Below are positions 12,197 to 45,119 of a stretch of DNA of 64,000 bases, in pieces. The position numbers and the translations under genes were made by a program. The stretch lies in sequence record MK250028.1; one strand, written 5' to 3'. The first letter of the stretch is position 1; each line of letters begins with the position of its first letter. The notes below the pieces were generated by a model that made no database searches, was not told the origin of the DNA, and worked only from the letters and a program-made list of their open reading frames with translations.

Positions 12197-12198
12197 TT

Positions 12199-12921: not shown

Positions 12922-12935
12922 ATTATAATAAAATT

Positions 12936-13424
12936 ATGTTAGTATTTCATGGTAGTTCACAACGAATAGATTATATTGATATAGATAAATGTCATTTAGG
13001 TTGGCATTGCGGAAATATTTGTCAAGCAATAGATATTACAGACCCTAAAAGACATAATGATAAATTTGATTGGGAAACTACATATATTTATGTATCTGAT
13101 ATATATCCAACGCATGATAATACAATTTATATAGAAGATAAATTTAGATATTCTGATAATTTTTTAGATGATATTATTACAGAACTATCAAATAAGTTAA
13201 TATCAGAATTTCCTAATATATCATTAAATGATTTATATACATGTGAGTCTGAAAGAGATGTTAGAGACTTCTTACTTTATAATAATATAAAATATATTGC
13301 ATATGAAAATTTAATAGAAAGTAGAGGATTNNNNNNNNNNNNNNNNNNNNNNGGTGAAATAGATAATATACAAGAATATACATTTTATGATTTTTTAACA
13401 ATAAATTTAAATGCTAAAATTTAA
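12936..13424 (+). CDS. putative ADP-ribosyltransferase-fold protein
   Basis: N-terminal VFHGS, GWHCGxxxQA and YENxxExxG resemble H-type ART-like phage proteins; N gap. Confidence 0.4.
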   Translation: MLVFHGSSQRIDYIDIDKCHLGWHCGNICQAIDITDPKRHNDKFDWETTYIYVSDIYPTHDNTIYIEDKFRYSDNFLDDIITELSNKLISEFPNISLNDLYTCESERDVRDFLLYNNIKYIAYENLIESRGXXXXXXXXGEIDNIQEYTFYDFLTINLNAKI

Positions 13425-13641
13425 GAAACAACATAAACATTTCTTTATAACTAAATATAAATCTATGTTTTGTATAGAAGATATTATAAAAATAGCTCGT
13501 TATGATGATAATTGTACAGGAGGAAAAATATATAAAGCAAGATTAAATGGAATAAATGAAGATTATGATTTTAATATTGATCCAGATGATCAAGAACGAT
13601 TAGTAAAATATATTAAGCAGTTAGGATATGATAAAATTTAA
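13411..13641 (+). CDS. hypothetical protein
   Basis: 76-aa ORF. Confidence 0.6.
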   Translation: MLKFKKQHKHFFITKYKSMFCIEDIIKIARYDDNCTGGKIYKARLNGINEDYDFNIDPDDQERLVKYIKQLGYDKI

Positions 13642-14290
13642 TTTTGATAATAAAGGAGTTTCTATTAGTTCTAAAGATATGAAGGAATTTCAGGAGAATG
13701 TAATGACAGTAGAAGATATTGTTAATAGACTTTTGAAGTTTTATTCAAAGGATAAGACATATATGGGTGAACAGAAACAAATGCTTNNNNNNNNNNNNNN
13801 NNNNNNNNNNNNNNNNNNNNNNNNNNNNNNNNNNNNNNNNNNNNNNNNNNNNNNNNNNNNNNNNNNNNNAGCAGATAATAAATTGCATAAACTTATTATG
13901 TGGCGTGATGATAACAGTCTTCATAATTTTGCAATGTGGATTAAGAATGAAGATATGCTTGGAGGTAAGCTTGTGAAGATTTATCCAGAAGATGATGATA
14001 TTTTTACAAAGAATCAAATGGAAGGTGCAATGTATCTTGCAGAAATTAATAAGATACCATATTTTGAAGGATGTGATGAACATGCGGATAATTATGTATA
14101 TCAAACAAAGTTGAAGGAACTTGATGATGAAATTGAAAATATCAAGAATCAACGAACATCTTGTAAGAACGAAATGAAATCTATTCAAGATAGATATGCT
14201 GAACTTCTTACATATTATGCAAAGATGAAAGTAAAGCAAGTTAAATTGCAAATTGAAAGAGAAACATTAGTTAATAAACATAAGAAGTAA
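13628..14290 (+). CDS. hypothetical protein with C-terminal coiled coil
   Basis: frame is preserved across an N gap. Confidence 0.65.
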   Translation: MIKFNFDNKGVSISSKDMKEFQENVMTVEDIVNRLLKFYSKDKTYMGEQKQMLXXXXXXXXXXXXXXXXXXXXXXXXXXXXADNKLHKLIMWRDDNSLHNFAMWIKNEDMLGGKLVKIYPEDDDIFTKNQMEGAMYLAEINKIPYFEGCDEHADNYVYQTKLKELDDEIENIKNQRTSCKNEMKSIQDRYAELLTYYAKMKVKQVKLQIERETLVNKHKK

Positions 14291-14991
14291 TAGAANNNNN
14301 NNNNNNNNNNNNNNNNNNNNNNNNNNNNNNNNNNNNNNNNNNNNNNNNNNNNNNNNNNNNNNNNNNNNNNNNNNNNNNNNNNNNNNNNNNNNNNNNNNNN
14401 NNNNNNNNNNNNNNNNNNNNNNNNNNNNNNNNNNNNNNNNNNNNNNNNNNNNNNNNNNNNNNNNNNNNNNNNNNNNNNNNNNNNNNNNNNNNNNNNNNNN
14501 NNNNNNNNNNNNNNNNNNNNNNNNNNNNNNNNNNNNNNNNNNNNNNNNNNNNNNNNNNNNNNNNNNNNNNNNNNNNNNNNNNNNNNNNNNNNNNNNNNNN
14601 NNNNNNNNNNNNNNNNNNNNNNNNNNNNNNNNNNNNNNNNNNNNNNNNNNNNNNNNNNNNNNNNNNNNNNNNNNNNNNNNNNNNNNNNNNNNNNNNNNNN
14701 NNNNNNNNNNNNNNNNNNNNNNNNNNNNNNNNNNNNNNNNNNNNNNNNNNNNNNNNNNNNNNNNNNNNNNNNNNNNNNNNNNNNNNNNNNNNNNNNNNNN
14801 NNNNNNNNNNNNNNNNNNNNNNNNNNNNNNNNNNNNNNNNNNNNNNNNNNNNNNNNNNNNNNNNNNNNNNNNNNNNNNNNNNNNNNNNNNNNNNNNNNNN
14901 NNNNNNNNNNNNNNNNNNNNNNNNNNNNNNNNNNNNNNNNNNNNNNNNNNNNNNNNNNNNNNNNNNNNNNNNNNNNNNNNNNNNNNNNNNC

Positions 14992-15222
14992 GAAAGAGAA
15001 CAAGCGTCTTATTCTTCTATTATTAATAATAGTCTTAATCAGACAATGAAGAAGATGACAATTATAACCATATGTTTAATGGTCGCAGCACTTATTCCAG
15101 GATTTTATGGAATGAATTTAAATAATGGAATAGAAACATGGACATATGGATTTCCTTTTGCTGTTTGTTTAACAGGAATATGTGCAGGAATATCTTATTT
15201 TTTATGTAAACTATTTAAGTAA
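14992..15222 (+). CDS. corA: CorA-family Mg2+/Co2+ transporter, C-terminal part (5' portion hidden in N gap 14296-14990)
   Basis: translates EREQASYSSIINNSLNQTMKKMTIITICLMVAALIPGFYGMNLNNGIETWTYGFPFAVCLTGICAGISYFLCKLFK*: GMN signature between two TM helices. Confidence 0.85.
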   Translation, partial: EREQASYSSIINNSLNQTMKKMTIITICLMVAALIPGFYGMNLNNGIETWTYGFPFAVCLTGICAGISYFLCKLFK

Positions 15223-15236
15223 ATATATATATAAAT

Positions 15237-15437
15237 ATGAGTATATGTTTTAGAAATATAGATAAATGTAAATATTCAAAAGAAGAAATAAAACTTCGTA
15301 TTATTGAAAATCTTATAGAAAATAGGTTTAAAAATTACAGTAATAAAGAGTTGAAAGATTCTATGTATGGTACTAATAACGTTTTCCCAAGATTTAATGA
15401 AATTTATAATTGGATTTGTGAACATGTATTTGAATAA
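15237..15437 (+). CDS. hypothetical protein
   Basis: 66-aa ORF. Confidence 0.55.
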   Translation: MSICFRNIDKCKYSKEEIKLRIIENLIENRFKNYSNKELKDSMYGTNNVFPRFNEIYNWICEHVFE

Positions 15438-15441
15438 TGAT

Positions 15442-15642
15442 ATGATACGATTTAAAAATAAAGATAATAATATAAAACATGAATTAACAAATGAAGAGAT
15501 AAATCTTAAAATTCATGAATTAGTATTAAAAACTATTACTGCAAAAAGAACTTATCTTTCTGATATATGTACAGATATGTCAAAAGAAGATGGATATTAT
15601 AAAAAAATGGTATCTATTATAAAAGAACATATACATGATTAA
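15442..15642 (+). CDS. hypothetical protein
   Basis: probable start ATG 15442 within the longer listed ORF. Confidence 0.5.
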   Translation: MIRFKNKDNNIKHELTNEEINLKIHELVLKTITAKRTYLSDICTDMSKEDGYYKKMVSIIKEHIHD

Positions 15643-15923
15643 GTTATTATATAAATTAAAAATAAACAAAATATTAAAATAAAAGATAATATTTAAATAA
15701 TAAAATTAAATAAATAAAAGTATGTTGATTGGTTCATGTGTATTATCTNNNNNNNNNNNNNNNNNNNNNNNNNNNNNNNNNNNNNNNNNNNNNNNNNNNN
15801 NNNNNNNNNNNNNNNNNNNNNNNNNNNNNNNNNNNNNNNNNNNNNNNNNTATCGTCTATATTATTATTGGACAAAAGAGTGTAAAAGTTAATTATTGATT
15901 CACATTTAAATAATAATAGAAAA

Positions 15924-16409
15924 ATGGAAAATAATAAACAAGAGGTTAATGAGATTATTGAGAAGTATGATATTCTTATCAAAAATGCAATGAAGGCGCG
16001 TGAGAAAGAAAAACTTAATACTTATAAGTTGGTTAAGGCTCGTCTTCTTGAGTATAAAACAGGTGATAAGGATAAAAATGATAATTATCCAGTATTGGAT
16101 GAAAAATCTGAAATGCAGATTCTTAATAAGATGGTAAAGGAACTTCAAGGTGATATTGAGATTCGACAGAAAACAAATAGTCATTTGGATGAAGTTGAGG
16201 AATTTACGCATCAGATGAACTATATTAAGGATNNNNNNNNNNNNNNNNNNNNNNNNNNNNNNNNNNNTTCAGTAATTGATAAGTATATTTCTGATAATGG
16301 AAATTATTCTCAAAAAGAAATGGGTAAGGTTATCGGTTTTGTTCGTTCATCATTTAAAGCAGTTGATGGTGGAATGGTTGCAAAACTTGTTAAAGCAAAG
16401 ATGTTTTAA
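15924..16409 (+). CDS. GatB/YqeY domain protein
   Basis: AMKAREKEKL..YKLVKA at the N-terminus and MGKVIG...VDGGMVAKLVKAKM at the C-terminus. Confidence 0.85.
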   Translation: MENNKQEVNEIIEKYDILIKNAMKAREKEKLNTYKLVKARLLEYKTGDKDKNDNYPVLDEKSEMQILNKMVKELQGDIEIRQKTNSHLDEVEEFTHQMNYIKDXXXXXXXXXXXXSVIDKYISDNGNYSQKEMGKVIGFVRSSFKAVDGGMVAKLVKAKMF

Positions 16410-16515
16410 ATAATAACTAAATAAATTATAAAGTGGGTATATTCATGTATATGAAATATATCCGCTTTTTCTATATTTAATAAAATAAATATTAAAAATA
16501 TGTATATAATAAAGA

Positions 16516-17253
16516 ATGACTAGATCTGAATTTATTGAATGGTTAAAATCAGAAATAACAATGAGTAATACTATAAATATTTCTTTATCGGACCGTGAAT
16601 ATGAAAGACTTGTAGATAGAGAACTAAGAATGGTTTATGAATTGGATAATGATAGCGTGCGTTATGATAAATATATAATCCCACGAGATGTATTTTATTC
16701 TCAAGAATTTAGGAAAACTAGAACTATAAAATTTCCTGATTGCGTTTTATCTGTAGTTAAATTGGAAGAGATGAAAAGGAGAAATTATATGTATGGTGTG
16801 AACGACCCAGATCTATCATGGAACCGTATGTTTTAGACAGATATGTGGATGGGTCCGTAGATGGCGATGGACACTGTGATGTTTAGGACTATATAGTGGT
16901 CTAATTGGGATTAGTTAAAATAGTTTAATTTAGTTGATATAAAGCATAAGTGGAATAGACTTACACATTAGTTATTTGTGATGGGACATGATCCATATAA
17001 TGATGTTTATTGTGAAGTAGCTGTAAAGGTAGATGAACAGGAATTATTTGAAGATCCTTGGGTAAGACAATGGATTGCAGCTAAATGTAAGTTATAGGTT
17101 GTGAAAAAATTAGGAACATTTACAGTGACTGCAATTGGAGGTGTAACTGTAAATACAGGAACATATTCAGAAGAAGCAAATAATGATATAAATGATTGTA
17201 AAGAATATTGGACTAATTTACGTCAAGCAGATTTTTTCGAAACAGGTTGGTAA
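16516..17253 (+). CDS. neck protein, T4 gp13-like (TAG=Gln)
   Basis: continuous through TAGs to TAA 17251; C-terminal WVRQWIAAKCKLQ...GGVTVN...EEA matches the gp13 pattern. Confidence 0.75.
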
Positions 17254-17380
17254 TTAAAGAATTGGTTATTAATAAGTTAAGATATGTTAATAGAGAATGT
17301 AATATTTTGTAATTTATGAATATTGCATTCTCTATTTTTATAAAATAAATAATGTAAAATTAAGAATAATTTTAGTTAAT

Positions 17381-18805
17381 ATGGGATATAAAAGATACGG
17401 ATCAAGTATATCTATACCACAATTTGAAGAAGAAGAAGGAGAAGCAGTAAGTAGTGAATTAAGTTAGCGTTCACCTAGTAAAACTATATATTTTGGTATT
17501 AAAAAACCAAAAACTGATTCTGATTCAAATAGGTCTTGGCGAGAATTAACTAGTGCAGATTTTAATATATAGATTACAAGTGATACTACTGGATGTAGTG
17601 CAACAATAAAAAAAAATACAACTGATACTACAAATAAAACAGGTATTATTACTTATACATTATCTAAAAACTCTACGGGAAGTTAGAGACTTATAACATT
17701 TAAATATAAAGATACCGAATTATTTAAAATATTGTAGGATCCTGCGGAAGAAGATAATAATATATATGTATATTTAAGATATTGGGTATTTTTTAAAACA
17801 CCTTATTCCAATATTATAACATCAACAAATAATGATACAACTTTATATAGATTTTCATTAGGTATTGATTCAGAAGATCCTGATGCATATATAAGTTATG
17901 AAACATGGAAAGATACAGGTAATATAATATATCATGTAACTAATAATAAAGATTTAACAAGTATATTTAATGCAACGACTTCAATAAAAAAATTAGTAGA
18001 TAATGGGACATTAACATACATAGGAGGGAAAAATTTTGATAATAATACTATATCAAGTATTATAAAATTTCCAATAAAAATGTATAAAAATGAAAATACA
18101 CTTGTTCCTGTTAATGATAATAGTACTGTATATATATACTATGGTGGTTTTGAAGCGACAGTTAACGCAAATGATTATGTATATAGTAATGATAGTTTAC
18201 ATAGTATTATAAATTGGGGAAATGTTATAGATGGTGATGTAACATCTATTGGAAAGTATAAATATAATTCTGAAACTACTACAACATATACCGTTACATG
18301 GAATCTTAATAGTGGAACTATAAATGGAAATACTAGTAATCCTAAATAGGTAGGAATTACATCAGGTTCAACAGTATCTTTTGTAAATTATATACCACAA
18401 CGTACTGGTTATACTTTTGAAGGATGGGCAGAAACAAGCACAGCAACTTCTGGTAAAAAAACTGGTAATTCCGAACCTATAACATCAAATAAAACATTTT
18501 ATGCTATATGGAAAGTAACTACAAAAAATGTAATATTTAGTATTGGTTCTTCAACAAATTATATTACAATTACTTGGTCTGAACCAGGTTTACCCGATAC
18601 ATCTTTTACAATACAAGTAAAAGATGTTACAATTAGTAGTACATATGTAGTAACTATACCAGGAAATATACAAAATAACAGTTATAAAACAAACATAGCA
18701 TCTATTTCAGGTCATTCATATGGGTTAGTTAGTTGTTCACCTACAACATATAATAATGTTAATTATAGTGTATTTACTGGTTTAACATTAATAAATGGGT
18801 AGTAA
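17381..18805 (+). CDS. virion/adhesin-like protein with BACON-like domain and Listeria-Bacteroides (InlB B) repeat (TAG=Gln)
   Basis: open under code 15 to TAA 18803; YTVTWNLNSG...PQRTGYTFEGWAE...KTFYAIWK. Confidence 0.7.
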
Positions 18806-18922
18806 ATATTTTAATTCGTTATTCAAATCTAATTTTGCGTAACGAATTTTTTATTTATGTATATTAATACATAGGATTTTATATGTCTGTATAGATATTG
18901 AAATAATAAATTTCATCATTTT

Positions 18923-19615
18923 ATGTCAACATATAAAAAATATACATCATCCATAAATGCAAATATTTCTTCATCTGCTCATACAAATGAAGAATTTAAA
19001 TGGTATGTAGGTTCTTCAACATAGTCTACTGTTTATTTCGGCATGGAAGATAATGATAATAACTTTACAGGTAAATTATCAAATTCATCATATACATTAT
19101 CATCAGATGTATCCGGATGTTCTGCAACAGTATCAAATATAGATTCAACAAAAACTGCAGGAATAATATATTTAAATATACCAGCAAATACAAGTACAAC
19201 TAACAGAACAATCGTATTTAAATATAATACAGTTTCATTATTTACAATAATATAGTCAGGTAGCACAACTTCTGTAATTACTATAACATTTAGTATTGGT
19301 GGTTTTTAGGGAAATAATAAAGTTATAATTCACTGGACTGGAACTAATTTTTCATCAGATGGAACTACTGTAAGTTGTGGAATTAATGATAGTACGCCGA
19401 ATTCAGATGGTTCATATAATGCACAATTTACTATAACTATACCGTCAGGATATGGACAATCATATGCAACATGTGTTGGTGGATATGTATATAAAGGACA
19501 TAAATATTTTTTAATTGAACCATGTACACCATCATCATATGGTAATTATAGATTTAAATGTAATACTACAGAAGTTACTTATACAGATCGTATGACGGGT
19601 ACTATAACTACGTAA
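18923..19615 (+). CDS. BACON-like Ig-fold protein, paralog (TAG=Gln)
   Basis: SDVSGCSATV...ANTSTTNRTIVFKYNTVSLFTIIQ shared with 17381. Confidence 0.65.
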
Positions 19616-19674
19616 AGTGAGATATTGTATTTTCTAATTGAGTGTAGATATAAAAATTATTTTTTAATATTTTT

Positions 19675-20457
19675 ATGTCAACATATTAGAAATATCCTTA
19701 TAGTATACCAACGTTTACTATTAGTACACCAGCAAGTTCAGATTTAGTTAATTCTGACGGTGAATATGTATATTTAGGATTTGAAGATGAAGACGGTAAT
19801 TTTGTTGGAAATAATTCAATATCAAGTACAACTTCATTAATAATGTCTCCAAATACTGGAGGCTCTATTATAACGTATTCAACAGATACTACAAAAACTG
19901 CATCAAGAATACATTATTCATTTTCATAGAATACATCTAATACTTATACTATTTCATATAATAATACAGATTTATTTAAGATTGTTACACACAGTACAAG
20001 CGCAACAAAAACATATAATATATATTTAAGTTTAATAAATTTAAAAGATGTTAGTAGTTCTGATAACATTTCATATATATGTATATTTAAAAGCAATGTA
20101 GGTAATTTTCATGTAACTGATATTAATAGATTTGAATTAATGCAGGTATCAGTTTATAATAATTATATATTTTTTGGATATTCTTCAGATTATACAATGA
20201 TTTATGATACTTATAATGATATGAACCTTACATATAAATCAGGAACTAATTTTAGTAAATCAACATATGGTAATTGTTATATTGTTGATATAACAAATGA
20301 AAAAGTTTATATAGATACAAATGGTTATACAACTGAATCTATTACATATACATCTACATATTATATCTTTAGGTATGATGCTGGATATATGCAATACGTT
20401 TCATCTTTTAATATATATAATGATAATAATATCTATACATTAACAGTTACAACATAA
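19675..20457 (+). CDS. BACON-like Ig-fold protein, paralog (TAG=Gln)
   Basis: MSTYQKY start parallels MSTYKKY; YLGFEDEDGNF parallels YFGMEDNDNNF. Confidence 0.6.
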
Positions 20458-20507
20458 AAATAATATCATGAATAAATAATAAAAAGTTATTTTTTGATAT
20501 TATTTAT

Positions 20508-20921
20508 ATGAAAAGACATTCTATTCCATTAAATATACTTGATGAATATGCAAAAACAATTTCATCAAAATAGGTAAAAATGCTTTATGAATCAAAATGC
20601 AATAAGAAATNNNNNNNNNNNNNNNNNNNNNATATGAAATATCAAAATGATAAAAGTTATTCTATATATTTAAATGATTTCACTCTTGATGAAGCACATT
20701 CATCAGTAGACAAAGCATTAGTACGTTATGTAAATAAATATAAACTTCAATTCAACAAGGTATCGGATGGAGTTTACTTCTATACACCACTTGAAGAGAA
20801 TTATATTTCTTTACTTAAAAATCTTGTTCAAGATGGATTTGACATTGAACTCTTAAAGGAAAATGTAGATTCACAAAAAGCAACAGTTTATTTAGAAAAA
20901 TTAAAGTTAAATAAGAAATGA
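20508..20921 (+). CDS. hypothetical late protein (TAG=Gln)
   Basis: ATG 20508 in frame with the 20580 ORF through one TAG. Confidence 0.65.
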
Positions 20922-21625
20922 TTAAGATAAGAAGACGTAAACCTATTTTCGAGGACGATTAGAATACACAGCAATAGCAACAACCCGCAACAAATACTTA
21001 GCAACCAGCTACATAGGTGCCAGCTGCACAACCATAGTAGAATACAACTGCTCCATAGCAACCAACAAATAATCAACAACCAAATCAAACGCAAGATTAG
21101 AATAATAATCAACAACCATATGATTAGAATAATCAACAACAATAGCAACAACCAAATCCTAATGCATAGAAAGTATAGGATACATTGAAACAAATGGAGA
21201 ATACATGGTGGATGATTTCTGTTAACCTTCCTGATGAAATTCAAAAGAATATTCCTGATTTTAAACAAGGTAATCAACAAGCAGATCCAGCAATTAAAGC
21301 ATGGAATGATTTCAAACAAAATCCATCAGAAGATACATTTAAAAATTTCTTAAATGGATTTAAATCATTTGGCGGATTATCTGGTGATTAGAATGCTAAT
21401 AATAATCAACAACCATAGCAGAATAATGGAACAACAACTCAATAGCAACCTGCTAATAATACACAGCAACCTAATCAACAACCATAGCAGAATGTTAATG
21501 CAGGATTAAAAGCCGCATATTCATTCAGAAAGAATTTAATGGAAAATTTAGCTATTGCAAAATAGAAACAATATTATAATACAGTTTGTGAAGATTATTT
21601 TGATAAAAATGAATTTACATTATAA
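20918..21625 (+). CDS. Gln/Asn/Pro-rich low-complexity protein (TAG=Gln)
   Basis: poly-Q tracts written with CAA, CAG and TAG interleaved; ends TAA 21623. Confidence 0.8.
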
Positions 21626-21630
21626 TTATT

Positions 21631-22392
21631 ATGAAGAAATATAAATATGTTTACAACACAAAAACTGGACATTTTATAAAGAAACTTAATGAGGATGATT
21701 CAAATGTAAAAACCGATACAAATCAAGATAATAATAACTCTAATAATTCAACGGATAGTAAAGATGATGCTTCTACTGGAAATACATCTTTTAAATCTGT
21801 TGAGTCTGATGAAACAATTCAAGACCTTACTGCGAAAGCATAGGAAAATGAAAATAAGTTTCAACAAGACTTAAATACGCAATAGAAATTATTAGACGCA
21901 GCCAAAGCTACTGCATCAAATAAAACACCAGCAGGACCATATGATCCTGTTATGACAGATTAGAATGTTTTGAATATCATGAAGAAAATAAATGATATGA
22001 CAAAACAACATGCAATAGATTAGGCAAATTTTCAGGATTAGAAATTAGCTTAGCTTTAGAAATTATCACAAACAAATGAATCATATTATAAAATTCCAGA
22101 GAAATATAAATGGTTGAATGAATCAAATATTCACACAGCGAAAATCTATATGGGTAATCTTATTAAACCTGAAGAAGATGCTCCATTAAAAGGCATGGCT
22201 GATTTTAAGCGAGCGTTTAAAGATACTGACTTACTTTATGGAAAAGATAAGAACGGATACTTCGTTGTTTGTGTGGATTAGGAAGATTTTAATACTTTAT
22301 ATGACACTCTTGAAGAAAATTCTTATGTTAGAGACGAAATAATTGATACAGTTATGCCTTAGTTATTTGACAGACATGAAATGATCCAATAA
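21631..22392 (+). CDS. hypothetical late (possible head) protein (TAG=Gln)
   Basis: open to TAA 22390 under code 15. Confidence 0.7.
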
Positions 22393-22416
22393 AAATAATT
22401 ACATTAATATAAATTT

Positions 22417-23196
22417 ATGCAATATATAAGAACCACAGAAGATTTAGATCAAGATTTAATTTTATATGGAACATATCTGTTATATAATCCAACGACAAAT
22501 GTAACAAAGTTAAAAGTTTCAGAAAAACCTATATATATAGGATTAGATGATTTCGTTGAAGTATTAAATAGTCTTAAGAAGATTGCATCTGATTTAAAAA
22601 TAGTTCCTAATGAATATCCTGTATATCAATATATTCGTAGTAACAAATATAATGGTTCGACATGGAATATTGTTGCAGGTGTGGTTAATTCAGAGTTTAA
22701 AAAGATTGCAGATAAAGAATACTCAATGATTCCTAATATATAGAAGTTAATTCTTCCTAATAAGGAATATATTGATTTCCCACATTTTGCCGCTGTTTTC
22801 AATGGTCTCATTAATAAGCATGGTGACCTTTGTGGATATTGTGGTGATATTGTTCAGTTCGCAAAAGATATAAAAGAAAATCCAATGGTTGAATTTCCAT
22901 CTGGACATTTTGGAATCGAAGATTTAAGAACAGATATTGACGCTTATAATATATTTAAGATGAATAATAGCGATACGATAAATTCATTTAAATCTTATTA
23001 TGAAAATATGTCTGATAAGAAACGATTTTCATTATTTTTAGAAGATCATCCAAATATACTTGATAGCTTTAATAATTCAACCGATAATTTTTATCTTAAT
23101 ATATTAAAGCAAACAACAGATAAAGATTTAACAGATGAACATATAAAATTAGCATGTTAGAAAATGCAATTATATTTAGAAAATAATAAAGGTTGA
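22417..23196 (+). CDS. hypothetical late protein (TAG=Gln)
   Basis: joins ORFs 22417 and 22885 in one frame, ends TGA 23194. Confidence 0.7.
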
Positions 23197-23220
23197 GAAT
23201 AAACAAAATTCTCAACCTTT
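23188..23220. terminator. bidirectional intrinsic terminator
   Basis: AAAGGTTGAGAAT/ATTCTCAACCTTT hairpin between convergent genes. Confidence 0.75.
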
Positions 23221-23227
23221 TCTTTTA

Positions 23228-23875
23228 TTATAAGCTTTCTATATATTTCTTTATTCCTTCTACATGAATATCAATTATAGTATTCCTGCCTTCGTTACTC
23301 AATAGCCAGGAAGCATCTTCCTTGTTGTCCATAAACATATTCTCTGTTAAACATGCTGGACAATTTGTTTTACTTAATACATAGTAATTTGCTTCTTGAT
23401 CAGGATCACCATCTGAATAATCAGGTCGAAGTTTCTTTCCTAATGGTGTTAGTTTTTCTTCTGCTACTTTATATAATGCAGTTGCTAATTTATCACCTTC
23501 TGTTTGACCTTTACTTGTATATACAGACCATCCTTGTGCTTTATACCACTCACCATTTCCAGCTGCATTTACATGAATAGAAATAAAAATAGCTTTATTT
23601 CCAGATTTCTTTTCTTCTGCATATTTTGCATTAGCACGTTGAACGCGAAGACTTAAATCATGAGACTGACTTGTAATCTCTTCAACTTCAGGATGAACAA
23701 TATAACATCTATAACCTTCAGAAATTAATTTATTATAAACTTCATATCCTATTGCGCGAACATATGCATATTCTTTTAATTTAGTCTATGCATTATCAAA
23801 CACCGGACTGGATTTGCCAGGTGTATTTTGTCCGTGACCCATATCAAGCATTACTAAAACTTTACTCTTTTCCAT
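23228..23875 (-). CDS. N-acetylmuramoyl-L-alanine amidase (Amidase_3), probable endolysin (one TAG)
   Basis: LDMGHGQNTPGKSSP, LKEY, FISIHVNA, YYVLSKTNCPACLTENMFMDN; single in-frame TAG at 23786-23788. Confidence 0.92.
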
Positions 23876-23877
23876 AA

Positions 23878-25341
23878 TCAATAACTTTTATCATATAATT
23901 TAAATGTATCTACTGCTAATTCTTTCAAACAATTATTACTTAAACATACTCCATCATTTCCAGCCGTAGGCGCTAAGAAATTCTTCCATTTGTCTGAAAT
24001 ACTCTTATTTACCTTAATTGTTTTCCTATTGCGTTTACCTTGTTTAATTTCATCTTTACATCTCTATAAAGTAGAATTAAGATTATCATATATTTTTTGA
24101 ATATCTTCCTTATCCAATATATAAACGATATAATCAATATTACTAGTTCCTATATATCTTGGAAATAATACATATTTTATATTATCATCTGATAATATAT
24201 CCATTCCGCCTTTACGAGATATAGGAATTCTGAAATTATCTTCACTTGTACTCTTACGTTCAACAACAGCAAGCTCAAATTTTGCAGGATAATTTGGAAC
24301 ATTTGTTCTATTAGCAATATAAAAATCTCTACTACCAATACGCCTAGATGGTTCTCTTAATGATGCATACCCAAATTTATTTTTTAATACACCCTATATT
24401 CTCTATTTTAAATGAGAAGACGGATTATTATGCCCATAATCATATCTATCTTCATTAAGTGATTTCTTCACGCTAACTGCAATGGATTCAATTAAAGATT
24501 TATATAGTTCTTTTTTATTATTCATATTTTCAGTTAACTATAATTTTGATAACATATTTATTATTCGTTTATCAATGACAGCATACTAATCTATATCATC
24601 TACCATATCTGCATTTTCTATAATAGCTTTAAAAAATTCGTTGTTAACCTTATTATACATATAAAATGGAACATTATCTATATAACATGTACTTGTATTA
24701 AACAATACATATTTAAATTGCTTAATTAACTATTTAAATAATTCAACCAAACATTTTTCGTTTTCAAACTAACATTGTCTAATATAAACATTATTTGCTA
24801 ATTGACTTAATCCCTAATTTACAATCTAAGGAAAATTCTAAACAAATTTTAAAGTTAATTTATCATCTGTACTAGTTATCTATCTTTTATTTGATGTCTA
24901 TATAACAAATCTTTTTCTTTTATCTTTTAATTCAAATATGATCTTATCTGTTATCATATTATATTCATTAAACAACATATTAGCAAATGGTATCGCACAT
25001 GCATCATCATCTACAATTATATCATTATTTTCATACTATGCAGGATAAACCTATATGTAATTCAAATGTGTAAATGAATCATTAAAACTGAATAAGCATG
25101 ACAACATATTATATGTATACGGTAATATATCACCTTCACGTGTTTTATACTAACCTGAACAATGCTAAGGTTCATCATCTAATATTAATAAATAATGATC
25201 CTATACAACAGGAAACTAATATCTTTCTGTACCTAATTTCTTTATTAGTAACTATCCTATTTCTATAGGTACTGTTGTTCTCATTATAGAATTTGTTAAT
25301 TCAATATTATTACCAAAATCTATGTCATTAAATAAACCCAT
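23878..25341 (-). CDS. hypothetical late protein, possibly two fused units (TAG=Gln)
   Basis: no TAA/TGA in frame from 25341 to 23878; internal ATG at 24525 begins a leader-like segment. Confidence 0.6.
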
Positions 25342-25372
25342 TAAATATAAAATAACTATTTATTGTATTTAT

Positions 25373-25714
25373 TTAAAATGGTAATTCTTCACTAGGATCT
25401 TGCTGATAGAATGGAAGACAATTATTTCCGTAATGTTTCTTGAAATACTTTTTCTGAATCTTTTTTTCTTCACGTGATTGTCTCATTGATTCCCTCGATA
25501 CTGTGAAACTTGGACAATTTTCACAAATACCATACATATATTCATGTCTCTCGTTCTCTATATCATCATATGTTCTATTAGTAAAATGAGGTTGACGAGC
25601 ACAATGGAACCATGAAATAAACATAGGATATGGATCATCAGTTACCATATCATCATAAGATTTATCATGCGTACACTGACACATACAATATTTCTTTCTT
25701 AATCTACTTTTCAT
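25373..25714 (-). CDS. Cys-rich hypothetical protein
   Basis: CxC and CxxC motifs in a 113-aa ORF. Confidence 0.6.
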   Translation of the reverse strand: MKSRLRKKYCMCQCTHDKSYDDMVTDDPYPMFISWFHCARQPHFTNRTYDDIENERHEYMYGICENCPSFTVSRESMRQSREEKKIQKKYFKKHYGNNCLPFYQQDPSEELPF

Positions 25715-25830
25715 ATTTGTTAAATTTTAAACCATTATTATATAGTTTATATAATAATGTATAACTAATGTTTACTAAACTTTATTTTTATAATTAAATA
25801 CAATAATTATAAAATATTTTATTTATAGTT

Positions 25831-26967
25831 ATGACAGATATAGAATGTTTAGAATTTTATAATAAAAATATTAAATACAAACGATTTCATAAGAATTATT
25901 TAATTAAGATATATCCTGAATTTATGAAATATATACAAAATAGATTTTCGAATTTATCTGGTGATGAATCAGTTAAAGAATTAATATATAGAATAAAATA
26001 TAAATTAGTAGAAAAACCTAAATGTCCTATTTGTGGTAAATTACTTAAATTTATTAATATTAAAAATAAATACCAAACATTTTGTTCAAGAAAATGTCAA
26101 TTTTCTGATGAAGGACAATAGATACAATCTCAACTTAGATTTAATACAAAATTAAAGCGCTATGGAAATGGCACGTTCACAAATAGTGATAAAGCAAAGA
26201 NNNNNNNNNNNNNNNNNNNNNNAGTTACAAATGTCGGAGCTGTAAAAGAAGTAAGAGATAAAGTAAAAGAAACATGTTTAAAGAAATTTGGTGTAGATAA
26301 TCCCATTAAAAATAAAAATATAAAAGATAAAGTTAAGCAAACATGTTTAATGAAATTTGGTAGTGAAACGCCATTTGAATCAAATGATATATAGAAGAAA
26401 GTAAAACAAACATGTATAGAAAAGTATGGTGTAAAAAATATAATGCAACTTGAAGAAACGAAAGAAAAAATTAAGCAAACATGTTTAATGAAATATGGTG
26501 TAGAATATCCTATGCAATATAAAGATATAATGTTAAAATCTTTTAAAACATGCTGGCAATTAAAAAAAGGAAATAGAAGNNNNNNNNNNNNNNNNNNNNN
26601 NNNNNNNNNNNNNNNTACATTTATAGATAAAGATACAAAAAGACAATATTATTCAGAATTATATCCCTTTCATTGTGACTTTTATTTACCAAAATATGAT
26701 CTATATATAGAATATAATGGAACATGGACACATGGGAAACATCCATATAACAAAGATAATGAAGATGATATAGAATTACTCAATAAATGGAAAATTAAAG
26801 CAGAAAATAGTACATTTTATAAAAATGCAATTAAAAATTGGACTGTTAGAGATCCATTAAAAAGGCAAACAGCAAAATATAATAATTTAAATTATTTAGA
26901 AATATTTTATAATGATGATTATAAAACATATATATCTAATTATATAAATAGAATAAATGCTAAATAA
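25831..26967 (+). mobile_element. free-standing homing endonuclease gene (TAG=Gln)
   Basis: KPKCPICGK Zn knuckle, several KxTCLxK(Y/F)GVxxP repeats, C-terminal CDFYLPKYDLYIEYNG PD-(D/E)xK-like nuclease; two N gaps. Confidence 0.8.
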
Positions 26968-41737: not shown

Positions 41738-42187
41738 ATGAAAATATTAAATGATATAGTTAATAAAAAAGTATTAATAATATATAAATGTAATGGTCCT
41801 GCTGGATGGCATAGAGATTATTGTGGTTATAAAATTGGGAAAATAGTAGAATATAATATTGAAAATAATACTGTTAATATTGAAGATAAAAAGAAAAATA
41901 TAAAAACATATAAAATTATAGATAAAAAAGATCCATTTAATTTAAATTTAATACAAAATAATGATAATAGATTCGCATATTATTATATTTCAAACTATAG
42001 GCAAATACGTGAATGGGAAAATGTTTTTATATATAATGATGCATTAACTATTTTAAAAAATAGTATTAAACAATCACATTCACAATATGTATATAAACTA
42101 TTTTGTTTATCTTCATTTTCATATGGTAAAAAAACAAAGAAAAGATTTTTAAGAGATCTATTAAAAGAATTAGAAGAAAATTATTAA
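41738..42187 (+). CDS. paralog family member 4
   Basis: MKILNDIVNKKVLIIYKCNGP...RDYCGYKIG. Confidence 0.7.
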   Translation: MKILNDIVNKKVLIIYKCNGPAGWHRDYCGYKIGKIVEYNIENNTVNIEDKKKNIKTYKIIDKKDPFNLNLIQNNDNRFAYYYISNYRQIREWENVFIYNDALTILKNSIKQSHSQYVYKLFCLSSFSYGKKTKKRFLRDLLKELEENY

Positions 42188-42215
42188 TAATATTTTTTGT
42201 TTAAAATAAAATGTG

Positions 42216-42223
42216 TATCTTTG
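42216..42223 (+). promoter_or_regulatory. Bacteroidetes -7 box TATCTTTG
   Basis: ATGTGTATCTTTGTATTGT upstream of 42265. Confidence 0.72.
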
Positions 42224-42264
42224 TATTGTTAATAAAATAATGAACAATTAAAAATATAAACAAT

Positions 42265-42591
42265 ATGAAAGCAAATTTTGTAACGGTTATCAAGAAGAGA
42301 GCAATCAAGAATGTACCAGCATTTCAAGATTTCTCAATGAAACAGATTAAGGTTATTAGTAATTCACCTAATTATCCAAATTCTGTAACTTTATCTATGG
42401 ACATTTATTGTGATAATGTTGATGGTTATATTTTTAATAATGCATCTACAAATGAACAATATGCATTGACATCTGTTCAACTTAGTGACGCATTACGTAA
42501 GATGATTAGTAATAAAAAGTGTTATAAGCCTAACAGTAAGGAAGATTTACTTAGACTTACATTTGATACTATTGAATCTTTTAAATTTTAA
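42265..42591 (+). CDS. hypothetical protein
   Basis: 108-aa ORF with its own promoter. Confidence 0.7.
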   Translation: MKANFVTVIKKRAIKNVPAFQDFSMKQIKVISNSPNYPNSVTLSMDIYCDNVDGYIFNNASTNEQYALTSVQLSDALRKMISNKKCYKPNSKEDLLRLTFDTIESFKF

Positions 42592-42603
42592 TTAATTTAA
42601 ATG

Positions 42604-42632
42604 TAGACAATAATACATTATTAATATATAAT
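42604..42632 (+). promoter_or_regulatory. TAGACA-N17-TATAAT promoter upstream of the tRNA
   Basis: TAGACA 42604-42609 and TATAAT 42627-42632. Confidence 0.6.
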
Positions 42633-42691
42633 ATATATAAATTATTTGATTAAACAAATTAATGAAAAATTAAAAATAATTTATTAAAATG

Positions 42692-42722
42692 TAGACAATA
42701 TCAAATAAATAACATATAAATA
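42692..42722 (+). promoter_or_regulatory. TAGACA-N17-TATAAATA promoter upstream of the tRNA
   Basis: second tandem copy of the same motif. Confidence 0.6.
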
Positions 42723-42840
42723 ATATAATAATTAAAAACAAACGCTTATTTGATTTTCGTAGCGTTATGGATAAGTTGATAGAATTCAGAAATTCCTTTT
42801 AAGACGAATACACATGGAATGGTCCATTGGTGGAATTGGT

Positions 42841-43149
42841 AAAGTGTTTGCCTGCATTAATTTGTAGAATCCATCAAATTCAGTATCAGTTAGGATTAAA
42901 TTTTAAATATTAGTAGTTGCTATTGACGAAAATATTGACAATAATTAATTTATTGTTACCTGAGGAATAAGTGTTTATTTAATAAACAACGAAGAAGCTG
43001 ACTAAGAAAACCTAAGGTCTTCATAAGAAGATAGCTTGGTAATACTGAGCCAAGATAATTTTTAATTATAAGGTGCAGAGACTATACGGTGGGAACTAAT
43101 AGCAAGTTAAGATATAGTCCAAACTTTATAGAAATATAAAGAGTTTTTG
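42841..43149 (+). ncRNA. group I intron in the tRNA D-loop (309 nt, no ORF)
   Basis: P1 GGU-AAA/UUU-GCC with U.G at the 5' splice site, P10 GUGUUU/AGACAC, P7 GACUA 43080 / UAGUC 43115, terminal G 43149. Confidence 0.88.
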
Positions 43150-43164
43150 AGACACGAGGGACTT

Positions 43165-43512
43165 AAAAAATTTGAGTGCTCTATTGAGAAATCATAGAAG
43201 TAGAATCTCCCTAACGAAACGGAAGCCTAATTATTGGTGACAATAATGGTGGTGACGAACTCACTAAGTTGTTATAGAACGTTAATCTATATTAAATGTA
43301 AATTGAAGTGTTACAGCATAAATAGCGAAGAGACTATAGAGGAGATACCTAAGTTAAAGTACACGAAGAATAATCAATTAGATTATCACTATATATGAAG
43401 AGTATATAGTTTTATAATAAGGAATGCGCATTACTTTAATATGGTAGTAAAATAGTCCAGACTACAACATCTTAATAATTAAGATGGCTTGTATTAAAGC
43501 AAGAGTAGTAAG
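43165..43512 (+). ncRNA. group I intron in the tRNA anticodon, U34/A35 (348 nt, no ORF)
   Basis: P1 ACUU-AAA/UUU-GAGU with U.G at the splice site, P7 GACUA 43332 / UAGUC 43453, terminal G 43512. Confidence 0.9.
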
Positions 43513-43568
43513 AAAATCCCTTGGGCAGAAATGCCCGTGCCGGTTCGAATCCGGCATGGACTACATAT

Positions 43569-43607
43569 AAAAGTCTGATAATCAATAGCTTAGATTATCA
43601 GACTTTT
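43569..43607 (+). terminator. intrinsic terminator after the tRNA
   Basis: AAAAGTCTGATAATC/GATTATCAGACTTTT hairpin. Confidence 0.78.
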
Positions 43608-43648
43608 ATTTTTATATAGTATATAAAGTATAATTAATATTTTTAATA

Positions 43649-44785
43649 ATGATTACAATTACAGAACAATATATAAAAGAGTACCAAAAGAAATTAGATG
43701 ATATTTCTAAATCATTTGATTTAGAGAAACAACATATTATAGTTGAAGAATTATCAATTAAAGTTTCTGCACCAGATTTTTGGGATGATTTTGAAAGTGC
43801 GACATCAATCACAAAAGAACTTAATACAGCAAAAGAAAAGATAGATGATGTTGAACATATGAAAATGCTTATTGATGAGTTATCAACTGCATTAATGTAT
43901 TATAAGGAATTTGAAGGTAAAGATGAAGAAGAATATATAAATCTAGCGAATTCTGAATTAATTAGTGAATTCAGTAAATTTGAGGATAAGTATAGATTTG
44001 TTGATCCTACAGATTCATTAGGAGCTGTATTAGACATTAATGCAGGTGCAGGAGGAACAGAAGCAAATGATTGGGCAAATATGTTATTCCGTATGTATGA
44101 GATGTGGGCAAAATCAAATAATTATAAGTTTAAAGTTTTATATTATTCAGAAGGGGATAAAGTAGGTATTAAAAATGTATCTATTGAAATTACTGGTAAT
44201 AATGCGTATGGAACATTAAAAGGTGAAACCGGTGTTCATAGAATGGTAAGGGTTTCACCATATAATGCACAAGGTAAACGTATGACTAGTTTTGCTGCAG
44301 TTTCTGTTGTGCCTTTAGTAGATAATTCTATCAAGGTTGAAATTGACGATTCTAAATTAACAATAGATACATTTAGATCTTCTGGTGCTGGTGGTCAAAA
44401 TGTAAATAAGGTAGAATCTGGTGTACGTGTAAATTATATGTATACAGATCCAGATACAGGTGAAACAGAAAAAATTCAAGTTGCAAATACAGAAACAAGA
44501 GATCAACCAAAGAATAAAGAAAGAGCAATGCAAATTCTTAAATCTATTCTTTATAAGAAAGCATTGGATAAACAATTAGCTAAGAAAAAAGAAATAGAAG
44601 ATGCAAAACTTAAAAATGAATGGGGTGCACAAATTAGATCTTATGTATTTGATGATAAGCGAGTAAAAGATCATCGTACAGGTTATCAAACAACTGATGT
44701 TGATTCTGTTATGAATGGAAATATAAATGGTTTTATAGAATCATATAATAATTGGATTATTGAGCAAGAAAATAATAGACTTTAA
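43649..44785 (+). CDS. prfB: peptide chain release factor 2
   Basis: GGTEANDWA, GETGVHRMVRVSPY (SPF-type motif), FRSSGAGGQNVNK (GGQ), WGAQIRSY; no internal frameshift. Confidence 0.95.
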   Translation: MITITEQYIKEYQKKLDDISKSFDLEKQHIIVEELSIKVSAPDFWDDFESATSITKELNTAKEKIDDVEHMKMLIDELSTALMYYKEFEGKDEEEYINLANSELISEFSKFEDKYRFVDPTDSLGAVLDINAGAGGTEANDWANMLFRMYEMWAKSNNYKFKVLYYSEGDKVGIKNVSIEITGNNAYGTLKGETGVHRMVRVSPYNAQGKRMTSFAAVSVVPLVDNSIKVEIDDSKLTIDTFRSSGAGGQNVNKVESGVRVNYMYTDPDTGETEKIQVANTETRDQPKNKERAMQILKSILYKKALDKQLAKKKEIEDAKLKNEWGAQIRSYVFDDKRVKDHRTGYQTTDVDSVMNGNINGFIESYNNWIIEQENNRL

Positions 44786-44842
44786 TTAAATATTTTCTTA
44801 TAAATAATTAATGAAATATTTTCCTATATAAAATAAATTATG

Positions 44843-44850
44843 TATCTTTG
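44843..44850 (+). promoter_or_regulatory. Bacteroidetes -7 box TATCTTTG
   Basis: TTATGTATCTTTGTATTGT upstream of 44898. Confidence 0.72.
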
Positions 44851-44897
44851 TATTGTTGATAATTAAATTAGTATAAACAATTAAAAATATAAAGGTT

Positions 44898-45119
44898 ATG
44901 AAAGTACGTATAGGAAGAGACGAAAAGTTCATTGAACTTGGTAAGTATGACGATATAACAATTATAGATGATGCTGGTACAGAGTATCGCATTGAAGCAA
45001 ATGATCCTTGTTATCAAGGTAATGGTATAAAAGTTTATGATATTGATGGGTGCATTCTTGTAAAACCATCTACATCAAATCTTGTACAAATTTTCTCGAC
45101 ATCAAAGATTGAGTTGTAA
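44898..45119 (+). CDS. hypothetical protein
   Basis: 73-aa ORF with its own promoter. Confidence 0.7.
   Translation: MKVRIGRDEKFIELGKYDDITIIDDAGTEYRIEANDPCYQGNGIKVYDIDGCILVKPSTSNLVQIFSTSKIEL

Follow-up and report, generated by a model that had tools for sequence, protein, structure and literature searches.

Introduction

The tRNA group I introns reported so far all lie in the anticodon loop, a distribution that has shaped ideas linking intron position to the origin of tRNA. A survey of 81,000 genomes recognized 21 tRNA settings, every one of them in the anticodon loop, using a pipeline that examined only that loop (Williams, 2020, bioRxiv 10.1101/2020.01.27.920355), and the only other tRNA-like group I site that it cites is the T-loop of tmRNA. 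Reviews and the tRNAscan-SE 2.0 paper describe anticodon-loop cases only, and all phage group I introns known in 2014 were in protein genes (Hausner et al., 2014). A 64,000-nucleotide stretch of sequence record MK250028.1 (here called the window; 26% GC) raises the question of whether the D-loop of a tRNA can also hold a group I intron. The original prediction, made without database searches, had proposed that it does, placing such an intron at positions 42841–43149 and suggesting that the site was non-canonical and possibly new. Here we describe the interrupted gene, the anatomy of the intron, its relatives, and the recurrence of its insertion site in other hosts.

Results

A tRNA-Leu(UAA) gene of Lak phages contains two group I introns

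Between 42700 and 43700 the sequence matches Prevotella megaphage Lak-B1 (MK250020) and further Lak-B genomes at 100% identity and Lak-C1 at 92%, which identifies the window as Lak-B. These phages use TAG as a Gln codon and have a gene for release factor 2 (RF2) (Devoto et al., 2019, PMC6784885). Positions 42821–43563 comprise a tRNA-Leu(UAA) gene with exons of 20, 15 and 51 nt and two group I introns between them, which we refer to as I1 (in the D-loop) and I2 (at the anticodon). When 42841–43149 and 43165–43512 were removed in silico, ARAGORN recognized a canonical 87-nt tRNA-Leu(taa). The features of the locus are as follows.

42821–42840, + strand: tRNA exon 1 (acceptor 5′ strand, U8 G9, D-stem 5′ strand, and D-loop through G18 G19 U20), from ARAGORN on the spliced sequence and the Lak-A2 alignment
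42841–43149, + strand: D-loop group I intron I1, 309 nt, supported by RF00028, canonical pairs, and compensatory changes relative to viral contig L582
43150–43164, + strand: internal tRNA exon 2, 15 nt (end of the D-loop, D-stem 3′ strand, anticodon-stem 5′ strand, and C32 U33 U34)
43165–43512, + strand: 348-nt group I intron I2, inserted between anticodon nucleotides U34 and A35 (the classical site in Leu-UAA), read from the sequence
43513–43563, + strand: tRNA exon 3 (A35 A36 onward, long variable arm, T-arm, acceptor 3′ strand, and discriminator A)
43573–43613, + strand: terminator-like hairpin followed by a U-run, with an 11-bp stem GUCUGAUAAUC/GAUUAUCAGAC, read from the sequence
43649–44785, + strand: RF2 gene, directly downstream of the tRNA gene, which served as context and synteny anchor

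Exon 3 as encoded lacks the CCA, and the terminator-like hairpin at 43573–43613 went uncalled by the scan tool because its loop is 9 nt. Both ends of the short internal exon are predicted to pair with intron sequence, its first six nucleotides in P10 of I1 and its last four in P1 of I2. The interrupted locus was found in Lak-B1 to B9, in Lak-C1, in four IMG/VR contigs and in ERZ808258, with both inserts present in Lak-B, Lak-C1 and contigs L378/L123.

In the window's ORFs, TTA accounts for 45% of Leu codons and TTG for 18% (63% together). Table S2B of Devoto et al. (2019, PMC6784885) lists Leu(TAA) in A1 and A2 only and gives the B genomes only Leu(AAG); the tRNA-Leu(UAA) of Lak-B and Lak-C is absent from the published annotation. 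By annotation and codon counts, the interrupted gene is the sole decoder in Lak-B and Lak-C of UUA and UUG, which make up most Leu codons, and the decoding itself is inferred. Because UUA and UUG are so prevalent and Lak-B otherwise has only tRNA-Leu(AAG), the phage has a functional need for the interrupted tRNA. The exons are also under selection, as judged from a comparison of Lak-B with Lak-C1 in which I1 is 98% identical and the replacements in the tRNA are compensatory: five acceptor-stem pairs differ, with both strands changed (GGUCCAU/AUGGACU versus GGCGAGG/CCUCGCU), and the variable arm differs by one compensated pair.

Intronless alleles fix the insertion site in the D-loop

Exon 1 ends with GGAATTGGT at 42840, and the tRNA resumes with AGACAC at 43150, as the original prediction had stated. 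This places I1 in the D-loop after nucleotide 20, the U next to the invariant G18G19; the anatomy is established, and splicing at this site is inferred. In Lak-A2, where the upstream flank is the same and RF2 again lies downstream, the intervening tRNA-Leu(UAA) gene is uninterrupted (…GGAATAGGT-AGACAC…GACTT-AAAATC…); it is the one annotated at 286297–286382 (Devoto et al., 2019, PMC6784885). Other intronless alleles occur at the syntenic site in L383 (D-loop AATTGGT-AGACAC), L375, L376 and L384. Comparison with the syntenic, uninterrupted gene of Lak-A phages thus fixes both insertion points. At the DNA level the I1 junction retains a one-base ambiguity (T^A…G^A or TA^…GA^, where ^ marks the junction), which is resolved by the group I rule of a U at –1 and a G at omega. 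By the criterion common to the 21 tRNA group I types of Williams, location in the anticodon loop, I1 fails and I2 (at CUU^AAAA) qualifies.

A zinc-finger ORF adjoins every intronless allele that we examined. A family search with the Lak-A2 copy returned Zn-finger matches only and no nuclease family.

I1 has the anatomy of a complete group I intron

A script check confirmed that all proposed helix pairs of I1 are canonical. Its elements, in order, are listed below.

42838–42852, + strand: P1 hairpin, formed by exon GGU with AAA on one strand and UUU with GCC on the other
42853–42866, + strand: P2 mini-hairpin UGCA/UGUA (strands 42853–42856/42863–42866), corresponding to UACAC/GUGUA in L582 and to a longer P2 starting CUGC in the Bdellovibrionia contig L597
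42870–42885, + strand: P3 5′ strand UCCAUC (42870–42875), J3/4 AAA, and P4 5′ strand UUCAGUA (42879–42885), from an RNAduplex scan
42886–43001, + strand: extra peripheral domain of 116 nt between P4 and J4/5, with closing helix UCAGU/GCUGA (42886–42890/42997–43001)
43002–43039, + strand: J4/5 CUAAGAAAA, P5 (CCUAAG…/…CUUGG) and P5a (UCUUC/GAAGA), with P5/P5a at 43011–43039, by script pair check
43043–43073, + strand: P4 3′ strand UACUGAG (43043–43049), P6 (CC/GG) and P6a (AUAAUU/AAUUAU), with P6/P6a at 43050–43073, by script pair check
43078–43120, + strand: P7 5′ strand (43078, 43080–43085), P3 3′ strand (43088–43093), P8 (43094–43108), J8/7 AAGAU, and P7 3′ strand (43114–43120), by RF00028 and script pair check
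43121–43149, + strand: P9.0 (AAA 43121–43123/UUU 43146–43148), P9 with its GAAA loop (43124–43141), and omega-G (43149), by script pair check

P1 consists of G42838-C42852, G42839-C42851, U42840.G42850, A42841-U42849, A42842-U42848 and A42843-U42847, with the U42840.G42850 wobble marking the 5′ splice site and the exon contributing just 3 bp. The P1 loop and 3′ strand supply the guide GUGUUU (42844–42849), which matches AGACAC (43150–43155) at all six positions, including one G.U, to form P10. In the core, P3 pairs UCCAUC with GGUGGG (42870–42875/43088–43093) and P4 pairs UUCAGUA with UACUGAG (42879–42885/43043–43049), and the motifs GCAGAGACUAUAC at 43075–43087 and AAGAUAUAGUCC at 43109–43120 combine to form P7. 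The P7 helix comprises G43078-C43120, a bulged A43079, and G43080-C43119 through U43085-A43114. Inferred from sequence alone, the G43080-C43119 pair beside the bulged A is the putative guanosine-binding site; its counterpart in the Tetrahymena intron is the G264-C311 site. I1 thus satisfies the structural criteria for a group I intron, namely a U.G pair in P1, P10, a P3–P8 core with the P3/P7 pseudoknot, J3/4 and J8/7, a G-C pair by the P7 bulge, and omega-G.

Across 47 family members the P3-AA(A)-P4 rule is represented by 34 distinct P3 and 14 distinct P4 strand pairs, with I1 scoring 13 of 13, and the family layout around these helices is P3-AAA-UUCRG. A first model, built from the Rfam alignment, had assigned P2 to a hairpin at 42971–42990 and had placed a degenerate P3/P4 at 42996–43006; we dropped this placement in favor of the perfect P3-AAA-P4 at 42870–42885 found by the duplex scan and supported by the architecture of the relatives.

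I1 contains no ORF, its longest open stretch being at most 63 codons even with TAG read as Gln, and the RNA is ~30% GC. The minimum free energy (MFE) of I1 was –58.3 kcal/mol (z = –1.6), compared with –37.9 for the nested group I fold plus approximately –5.5 for P7, and thermodynamics alone does not decide the fold. The extra domain at 42886–43001 is AU-rich and holds most of the differences between Lak-B and Lak-C. Its position adjoining J4/5 could in principle disturb P1 docking.

The P1 pairs (U42840.G42850 and three A-U pairs among them), the six-of-six P10, the core motifs, and the GAAA-capped hairpin (43124–43141) before the final G (G43149) had all been proposed in the original prediction, and all held upon checking. 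Its overall assignment to group I also held: the intron is structurally complete, a full-length RF00028 match has E = 4e-9, and the intronless Lak-A2 gene yields the same insertion point, the last two of which place the proposed elements beyond chance. It had missed the 5′ strands of P3 and P4 near the 5′ end of the intron, with the large insertion after P4, and it had not recognized that another group I intron begins 15 nt past the end of I1.

A second group I intron interrupts the anticodon loop

I2 begins 15 nt downstream of I1 and is unrelated to it. Its elements include a P1 that pairs ACUU with GAGU and contains a U.G, P3 (43206–43210/43341–43345), P7 (43330, 43332–43337/43452–43458), P9.0 (43461–43465/43505–43509) and omega-G (43512), and its P7 has the same form as that of I1. 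Like I1 it has no ORF. An intron that splits the DNA primase gene in crAss-like phage cr116_1 matches I2 at ~80% identity, as do elements at other places in the Lak-A and Lak-C genomes; around one such element in Lak-A2 (L124), neither a tRNA nor a tmRNA could be reconstructed.

Standard tools miss or mis-call the locus

Searched against a 361-nt region alone, Rfam model RF00028 aligned to I1 over its full span (42967–43141) with 40.5 bits and E = 4e-9. This score is below the Rfam gathering score of 50 bits, which is a detection threshold and not a structural criterion for group I introns. We attribute the shortfall to the 116-nt peripheral helix between P4 and J4/5, which makes the model misplace P3 and P4. 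In the whole window, neither ARAGORN nor Rfam at the gathering threshold reported anything; Rfam with an E-value cut-off found no match in 4 kb, and RF00028 run over whole Lak records yielded no candidates. The L597 intron scored 43.8 bits, and neither I2 nor the L582 intron matched RF00028. Six 'Leu gag' ARAGORN calls among the core-pattern loci described below are apparently mis-called Lak loci, as was demonstrated for L378.

I1 has the core of anticodon-loop tRNA introns and close relatives in helicase genes

The core pattern GAGCCAAG N8–38 AAGGUGNAGAGACUA retrieved at least 126 loci in IMG/VR, I1 included, of which ~30 are tRNA anticodon-loop introns and the others lie in protein genes or are unresolved. 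(The pattern CCTAAG…GAGCCAAG was tried as a family probe and dropped as too unspecific.) Classical bacterial tRNA group I introns are reported to be of subgroup IC3 (Williams, 2020, bioRxiv 10.1101/2020.01.27.920355), and I1 meets the shared-core criterion for that subgroup, in that the pattern retrieves it alongside the ~30 anticodon-loop introns. From this shared core we infer that I1 is likely to be of the type found in bacterial tRNA anticodon loops and classed as IC3 in the literature. In the Azoarcus intron, a GAAA in L9 docks in a P5 receptor and L2 docks with P8. I1 has the L9 GAAA and a CCUAAG in P5; the 3′ strand of P5 reads UAGCUUGG, not the canonical UAUGG, and P2 has no tetraloop.

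The nearest sequence relatives of I1 are the introns of L277 and L279/L371, which contain an HNH endonuclease ORF and lie within motif VI (Q-x-x-G^R-x-x-R) of an SF2 helicase gene (Pfam ResIII/DEAD + Helicase_C). L277, L279 and I1 share the P1 layout (AAG-UAA-UUU-GCCAA in L277), the extra helix after P4, an invariant CUAAGAAAR, and P5/P5a. The homing sites in the helicase genes are AAATTTGGT^AGGTTA and AGTGGGT^AGAATC, and TTGGT^AG is common to the motif VI target and the tRNA D-loop (GGAATTGGT^AGACAC). The P10 guides diverge at precisely the positions where their 3′ exons do, with UAAUUU facing AGGUUA in the helicase intron and GUGUUU facing AGACAC in I1. Because the D-loop TTGGT^AGA mimics the motif VI site TTGGT^AG(R), it is likely, on sequence evidence, that one lineage moved between the helicase and D-loop targets and that its guide was retuned afterward; the direction is undetermined. 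From P7′ to P9, I1 matches an intron in a helicase gene of the T5-like Salmonella phage phA11 with 97% identity across 35 nt, which suggests modular exchange of intron parts.

The D-loop site recurs in another phage and in Bdellovibrionia

Using patterns that joined the tRNA D-arm to the P1 layout of I1, we found further hosts, as the original prediction had suggested seeking among phage and metagenome contigs; that prediction itself had missed the recurrence. One host is L582, a 159-kb viral contig (25.6% GC) without nucleotide similarity to Lak; in the phage collection, neither it nor the L279 contig had an informative nucleotide match. Its tRNA-Leu(UAA) gene has exon 1 at 867–886, a 345-nt intron at 887–1231 and exon 2 from 1232, lacks an anticodon intron, and gives tRNA-Leu(taa) when spliced in silico. 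The intron shares 59% identity with I1, as well as its insertion site, its P1 and the expanded helix that follows P4. Over 29 pairs of P3, P4, the extra helix, P5a and P6a, I1 and the L582 intron differ by 13 two-sided compensatory changes and 2 one-sided changes, with no pair broken (the pair tables were computed by script and not from a structure-aware alignment). The closing helix of the extra domain covaries as well, reading AGAGU/GCUCU in L582, AAAGU/ACUUU in L277 and UCAG/CUGA in L279.

The other hosts are Bdellovibrionia. On contig L597, a 212-nt intron (1510–1721; junction AATTGGT^AGACGC) occupies the same position in a tRNA-Leu(CAA) gene that is present in full, and in-silico splicing yields tRNA-Leu(caa). 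The same 5′ exon and intron start were present in two metagenome-assembled genomes, Bdellovibrionaceae ND5_Bin_38_1 and Pseudobdellovibrionaceae OTE_78, for which the 3′ tRNA halves were not found because the contigs stop within the intron. The D-loop pattern matched 3 of 390 genomes of the class. The 5′ junction GGU-AAA-NNG-UUU-GCC is common to all three lineages (Lak I1, L582 and L597), and the guide follows the exon, with UGUUU facing AAACA in L582, GUGUUU facing AGACAC in I1, and UAAUUU facing AGGUUA in the L277 helicase intron. The tRNA-Leu D-loop is thus a recurrent site for group I introns, occupied in Lak phages, in another large AT-rich phage and in Bdellovibrionia.

The scans had limited yield. 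In viral contigs the D-loop pattern matched mostly P-loop coding sequence, with only Lak and L582 remaining; in genome contigs it matched mostly aminotransferase (GRTGK) coding sequence, along with at least two Bdellovibrionia loci. A splice-and-ARAGORN survey of the 126 family cores recovered its positive control and found no convincing D-loop case beyond Lak; this survey was noisy, in that ARAGORN accepted many false 5′ halves. A metagenome scan anchored on RF2 recovered bacterial RF2 genes for the most part, with just three Lak loci among the results.

The unspliced precursor is present in gut metatranscriptomes

Two gut metatranscriptomes (X15 and X16) contained unspliced contigs over exon 1, I1, exon 2 and part of I2, and in X16 the intron-spanning contig had a depth of 143, compared with 18 for a contig over the adjacent RF2 region. 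In four RNA runs, for which we had contigs only, none of the contigs skipped either intron; a mature, modified tRNA, or any other rare or short product, would not be visible in contigs.

Discussion

We interpret I1 as a group I ribozyme intron without an ORF, located in the D-loop of tRNA-Leu(UAA) and probably spliced as follows, with catalysis and the order of events inferred. The gene would be transcribed as a precursor of ~750 nt. P1 (GGU.AAA/UUU.GCC) would present U42840.G42850, and exogenous guanosine bound at G43080-C43119 in P7 would cleave after U42840. The guide GUGUUU would then pair with AGACAC in P10 and P9.0 would position omega-G43149 into the G-site, such that ligation would restore the D-loop AAUUGGU-AGA. 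I2 would be removed from the anticodon loop likewise, leaving the 87-nt tRNA-Leu(UAA). The anatomy, the intronless allele, the recurrence of the site and the covariation are shown, whereas splicing, catalysis and the order of events are inferred. Observations that sit poorly with this interpretation are a group I fold less stable than the MFE structure, a z-score of only –1.6, a P1 with 3 exon base pairs, a sub-threshold RF00028 score, and the absence of direct evidence for splicing.

One could suppose that the gene is a pseudogene, in which at least one of the two inserts is an intron remnant that has decayed and no longer splices, with the host supplying tRNA-Leu(UAA) to Lak-B and Lak-C. The lack of spliced RNA among the contigs, the sub-threshold or absent Rfam matches, and the weak appearance of the AU-rich insertion and short P1 are compatible with this idea. 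We nonetheless consider it unlikely, in that the exons still form flawless tRNA halves whose acceptor-stem and variable-arm differences between Lak-B and Lak-C are compensatory, the core helices are intact with lineage differences confined to peripheral loops, 13 two-sided compensatory changes separate I1 from the L582 intron, and the P1 layout is invariant in three lineages. A milder alternative, which remains possible, is that I1 does not splice autonomously under physiological conditions but only with a phage or host protein cofactor. Favoring it are the AU-rich RNA, a group I fold that is not the MFE, and the tiny P2 and P8, with which the usual tetraloop–receptor clamps are perhaps missing; against it, no maturase-like ORF lies in or beside I1, and the GAAA of L9 and a CCUAAG-type P5 motif are kept.

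The 3′ splice site might instead lie upstream, at G43141 or G43143, which would leave extra D-loop nucleotides or a non-tRNA product. The Rfam alignment stops at G43141, and relatives end in …AAAG^, a motif that I1 has at 43138–43141. This placement is nevertheless very unlikely, as the guide pairs at six of six positions with 43150–43155 and not with 43142–43147, P9.0 brackets P9 with G43149 as omega, and only a junction at 43149^43150 restores the D-loop of the intronless allele. An assembly or chimera artefact, for which we found no supporting evidence, can be all but dismissed, given that more than 12 genomes and contigs, each assembled independently, show the same arrangement, as do contigs from unrelated sequencing runs.

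The preferred reading, a D-loop group I intron, sets I1 apart from each known system that it resembles. It shares with the bacterial and plastid introns in tRNA anticodon loops (Leu-UAA, fMet, Ile-CAU and Arg-CCU) a small size, the lack of an ORF, U at –1 and omega-G, and a P1/P10 guide directed at conserved tRNA sequence; it differs in its D-loop location, in the extra helix between P4 and J4/5, and in sharing its tRNA with another group I intron. Group I introns in the T-loop of tmRNA (cited in Williams, 2020) likewise lie in a tRNA-like domain outside the anticodon loop, but their host is tmRNA, whereas that of I1 is a tRNA and its site the D-loop. The non-canonical tRNA introns of archaea and Cyanidioschyzon (PMC4033280, PMC3728597) also occupy sites other than the anticodon loop, the D-arm included, may number several per gene, and are missed by standard tRNA finders; these are short bulge-helix-bulge introns removed by a protein endonuclease, whereas I1, at 309 nt, is of the ribozyme type and its host is a bacteriophage. 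Unlike the phage helicase introns (L277, L279 and phA11), which sit in a protein gene and carry an endonuclease ORF, I1 is in a tRNA and has none. The 'enigmatic' Lak tRNA introns (Devoto et al., 2019, PMC6784885) come from the same phage group and are likewise tRNA inserts unclassified by Rfam, but they are anticodon-loop insertions of ~90–120 nt found with the eukaryote mode of tRNAscan, and tRNA-Tyr alone was listed for Lak-B.

Neither Devoto et al. nor Crisci et al., who leave these Lak introns unclassified, describe the tRNA-Leu(UAA) D-loop case, and our literature searches for group I introns in the D-loop or D-arm, or in Bdellovibrio, returned nothing relevant. As far as the literature searched goes, then, the D-loop is a new insertion site for tRNA group I introns, and I1 is otherwise of the tRNA-intron type. 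The novelty suspected in the original prediction is in this way supported by database and literature checks, with the caveat that the large survey was limited to anticodon loops by design.

The locus illustrates an annotation blind spot, in that the tRNA for most Leu codons of a 550-kb phage went unannotated, mis-called by intron-aware ARAGORN and missed by Rfam. It also offers two natural experiments. The 15-nt internal exon common to two ribozymes should be useful for studies of co-transcriptional folding and splicing order, and the helicase and D-loop introns appear to be a natural case of target switching, in which a protein-coding site and an RNA-gene site share the same 8-nt junction and the P10 guide is retuned to each exon.

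A bolder reading is that position 20/21 of tRNA-Leu is a second long-lived home of group I introns, with a mobile lineage shuttling between helicase motif VI (TTGGT^AGR) and D-loops (TTGGT^AGA) in phages and bacteria, unseen by ARAGORN, by tRNAscan and often by Rfam. We hold this reading tentatively, the balance tilting slightly against it. For the Lak phages it could be extended to propose, as no more than a possibility, that the zinc-finger ORF may encode a free-standing homing endonuclease against which the two introns protect the tRNA–RF2 locus. If the second-home reading were true, some 'missing' tRNA-Leu genes would really be D-loop-interrupted. Independently of that reading, the presence of a D-loop ribozyme intron in three unrelated hosts indicates that a tRNA site other than the anticodon loop can hold a group I intron.

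A second intron and a short internal exon

The tRNA-Leu(UAA) gene that carries the D-loop group I intron (I1, window 42841-43149) also holds a second group I intron (I2, window 43165-43512), which lacks an ORF, is unrelated to I1 and is inserted at the classical anticodon site between U34 and A35. Rfam did not detect I2 (window 43165-43512), which has ~80% identity to the DNA primase intron of the crAss-like phage cr116_1. The exon separating I1 from I2 is only 15 nt long (window 43150-43164); its nucleotides 1-6 pair with the guide of I1 to form P10, and its nucleotides 12-15 pair with the guide of I2 to form P1.

An element resembling I2 was also found elsewhere, in Lak-A2:

L124:~1380-1895 (Lak-A2, MK250019 442028-445248), reverse strand, I2-like group I element

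On its 5′ side lies a piece resembling a tRNA acceptor and D-loop (AAGCTTAGATTTGGAATAAGT), and its 3′ side carries a UAA hairpin that resembles an anticodon arm, together with a T-arm and the complementary acceptor strand. One excision of this element gave no reconstructable tRNA or tmRNA.

Divergence and surroundings of the tRNA-Leu gene

Comparing the acceptor stem (window 42821-42827 and 43556-43562) with those in L001, L126 (a piece of Lak-A2) and L383 (an intronless allele), we found that nearly all of its positions differ among Lak-B, Lak-C and Lak-A, with the changes fully compensated. Unlike the acceptor stem, the D-arm and anticodon loop are constant across the three.

5′ strands of the tRNA-Leu acceptor stem
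Lak-B: GGUCCAU
Lak-C: GGCGAGG
Lak-A: GCCAAGA; in L383, GCCAGGA

Upstream of the gene, the motif ATGTAGACAAT occurs in two copies (window 42601-42612 and 42689-42700), the first overlapping a sequence that agrees with a sigma-70-type promoter at 11/12 positions (TAGACA-17-TATAAT, window 42604-42632). Two short intergenic stretches (window ~42175-42280 and ~44780-44900) have dozens of copies with 75–90% identity scattered over both strands of Lak-A2, and resemble a dispersed repeat or promoter-like element. Ten runs of N (1,089 N in all), either masked sequence or gaps, fall within window 11399-26615, the largest at 14296-14990.

Sequence accompanying the intronless alleles

All intronless alleles seen (Lak-A2, L383, L375, L376 and L384) contain ~800–850 nt of extra sequence between tRNA-Leu and the release factor 2 gene, which is missing from every two-intron allele, including the one studied here (window 43564-43648). 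In Lak-A2 (L126:2290-3066) and L383 (~325-1098), the two alleles read at the sequence level, the extra sequence encloses an ORF of ~258 codons, some of them in-frame TAG, whose N-terminus has two zinc fingers of the C2H2/C2HC type (PF22992; in Lak-A2, E 3.8e-9). The ORF may encode a free-standing homing endonuclease that competes with the introns, although we identified no nuclease domain in it.

Relatives of the D-loop intron

At the Bdellovibrionia loci (L597:~1288-1326 and L591), the D-loop-interrupted gene is preceded, at a distance of ~160 nt, by a 5′ half of tRNA-Leu(CAA) that is truncated and has no intron. This half-copy is of the type that remains as a duplicate when an element integrates at a tRNA gene. 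The P7′–P9 end of I1 (window 43109-43143) has 97% identity over 35 nt to L251:1501-1535, the end of an ORF-containing intron that interrupts a DNA helicase gene in Salmonella phage phA11, a T5-like phage, which hints that intron 3′ domains are exchanged as modules.
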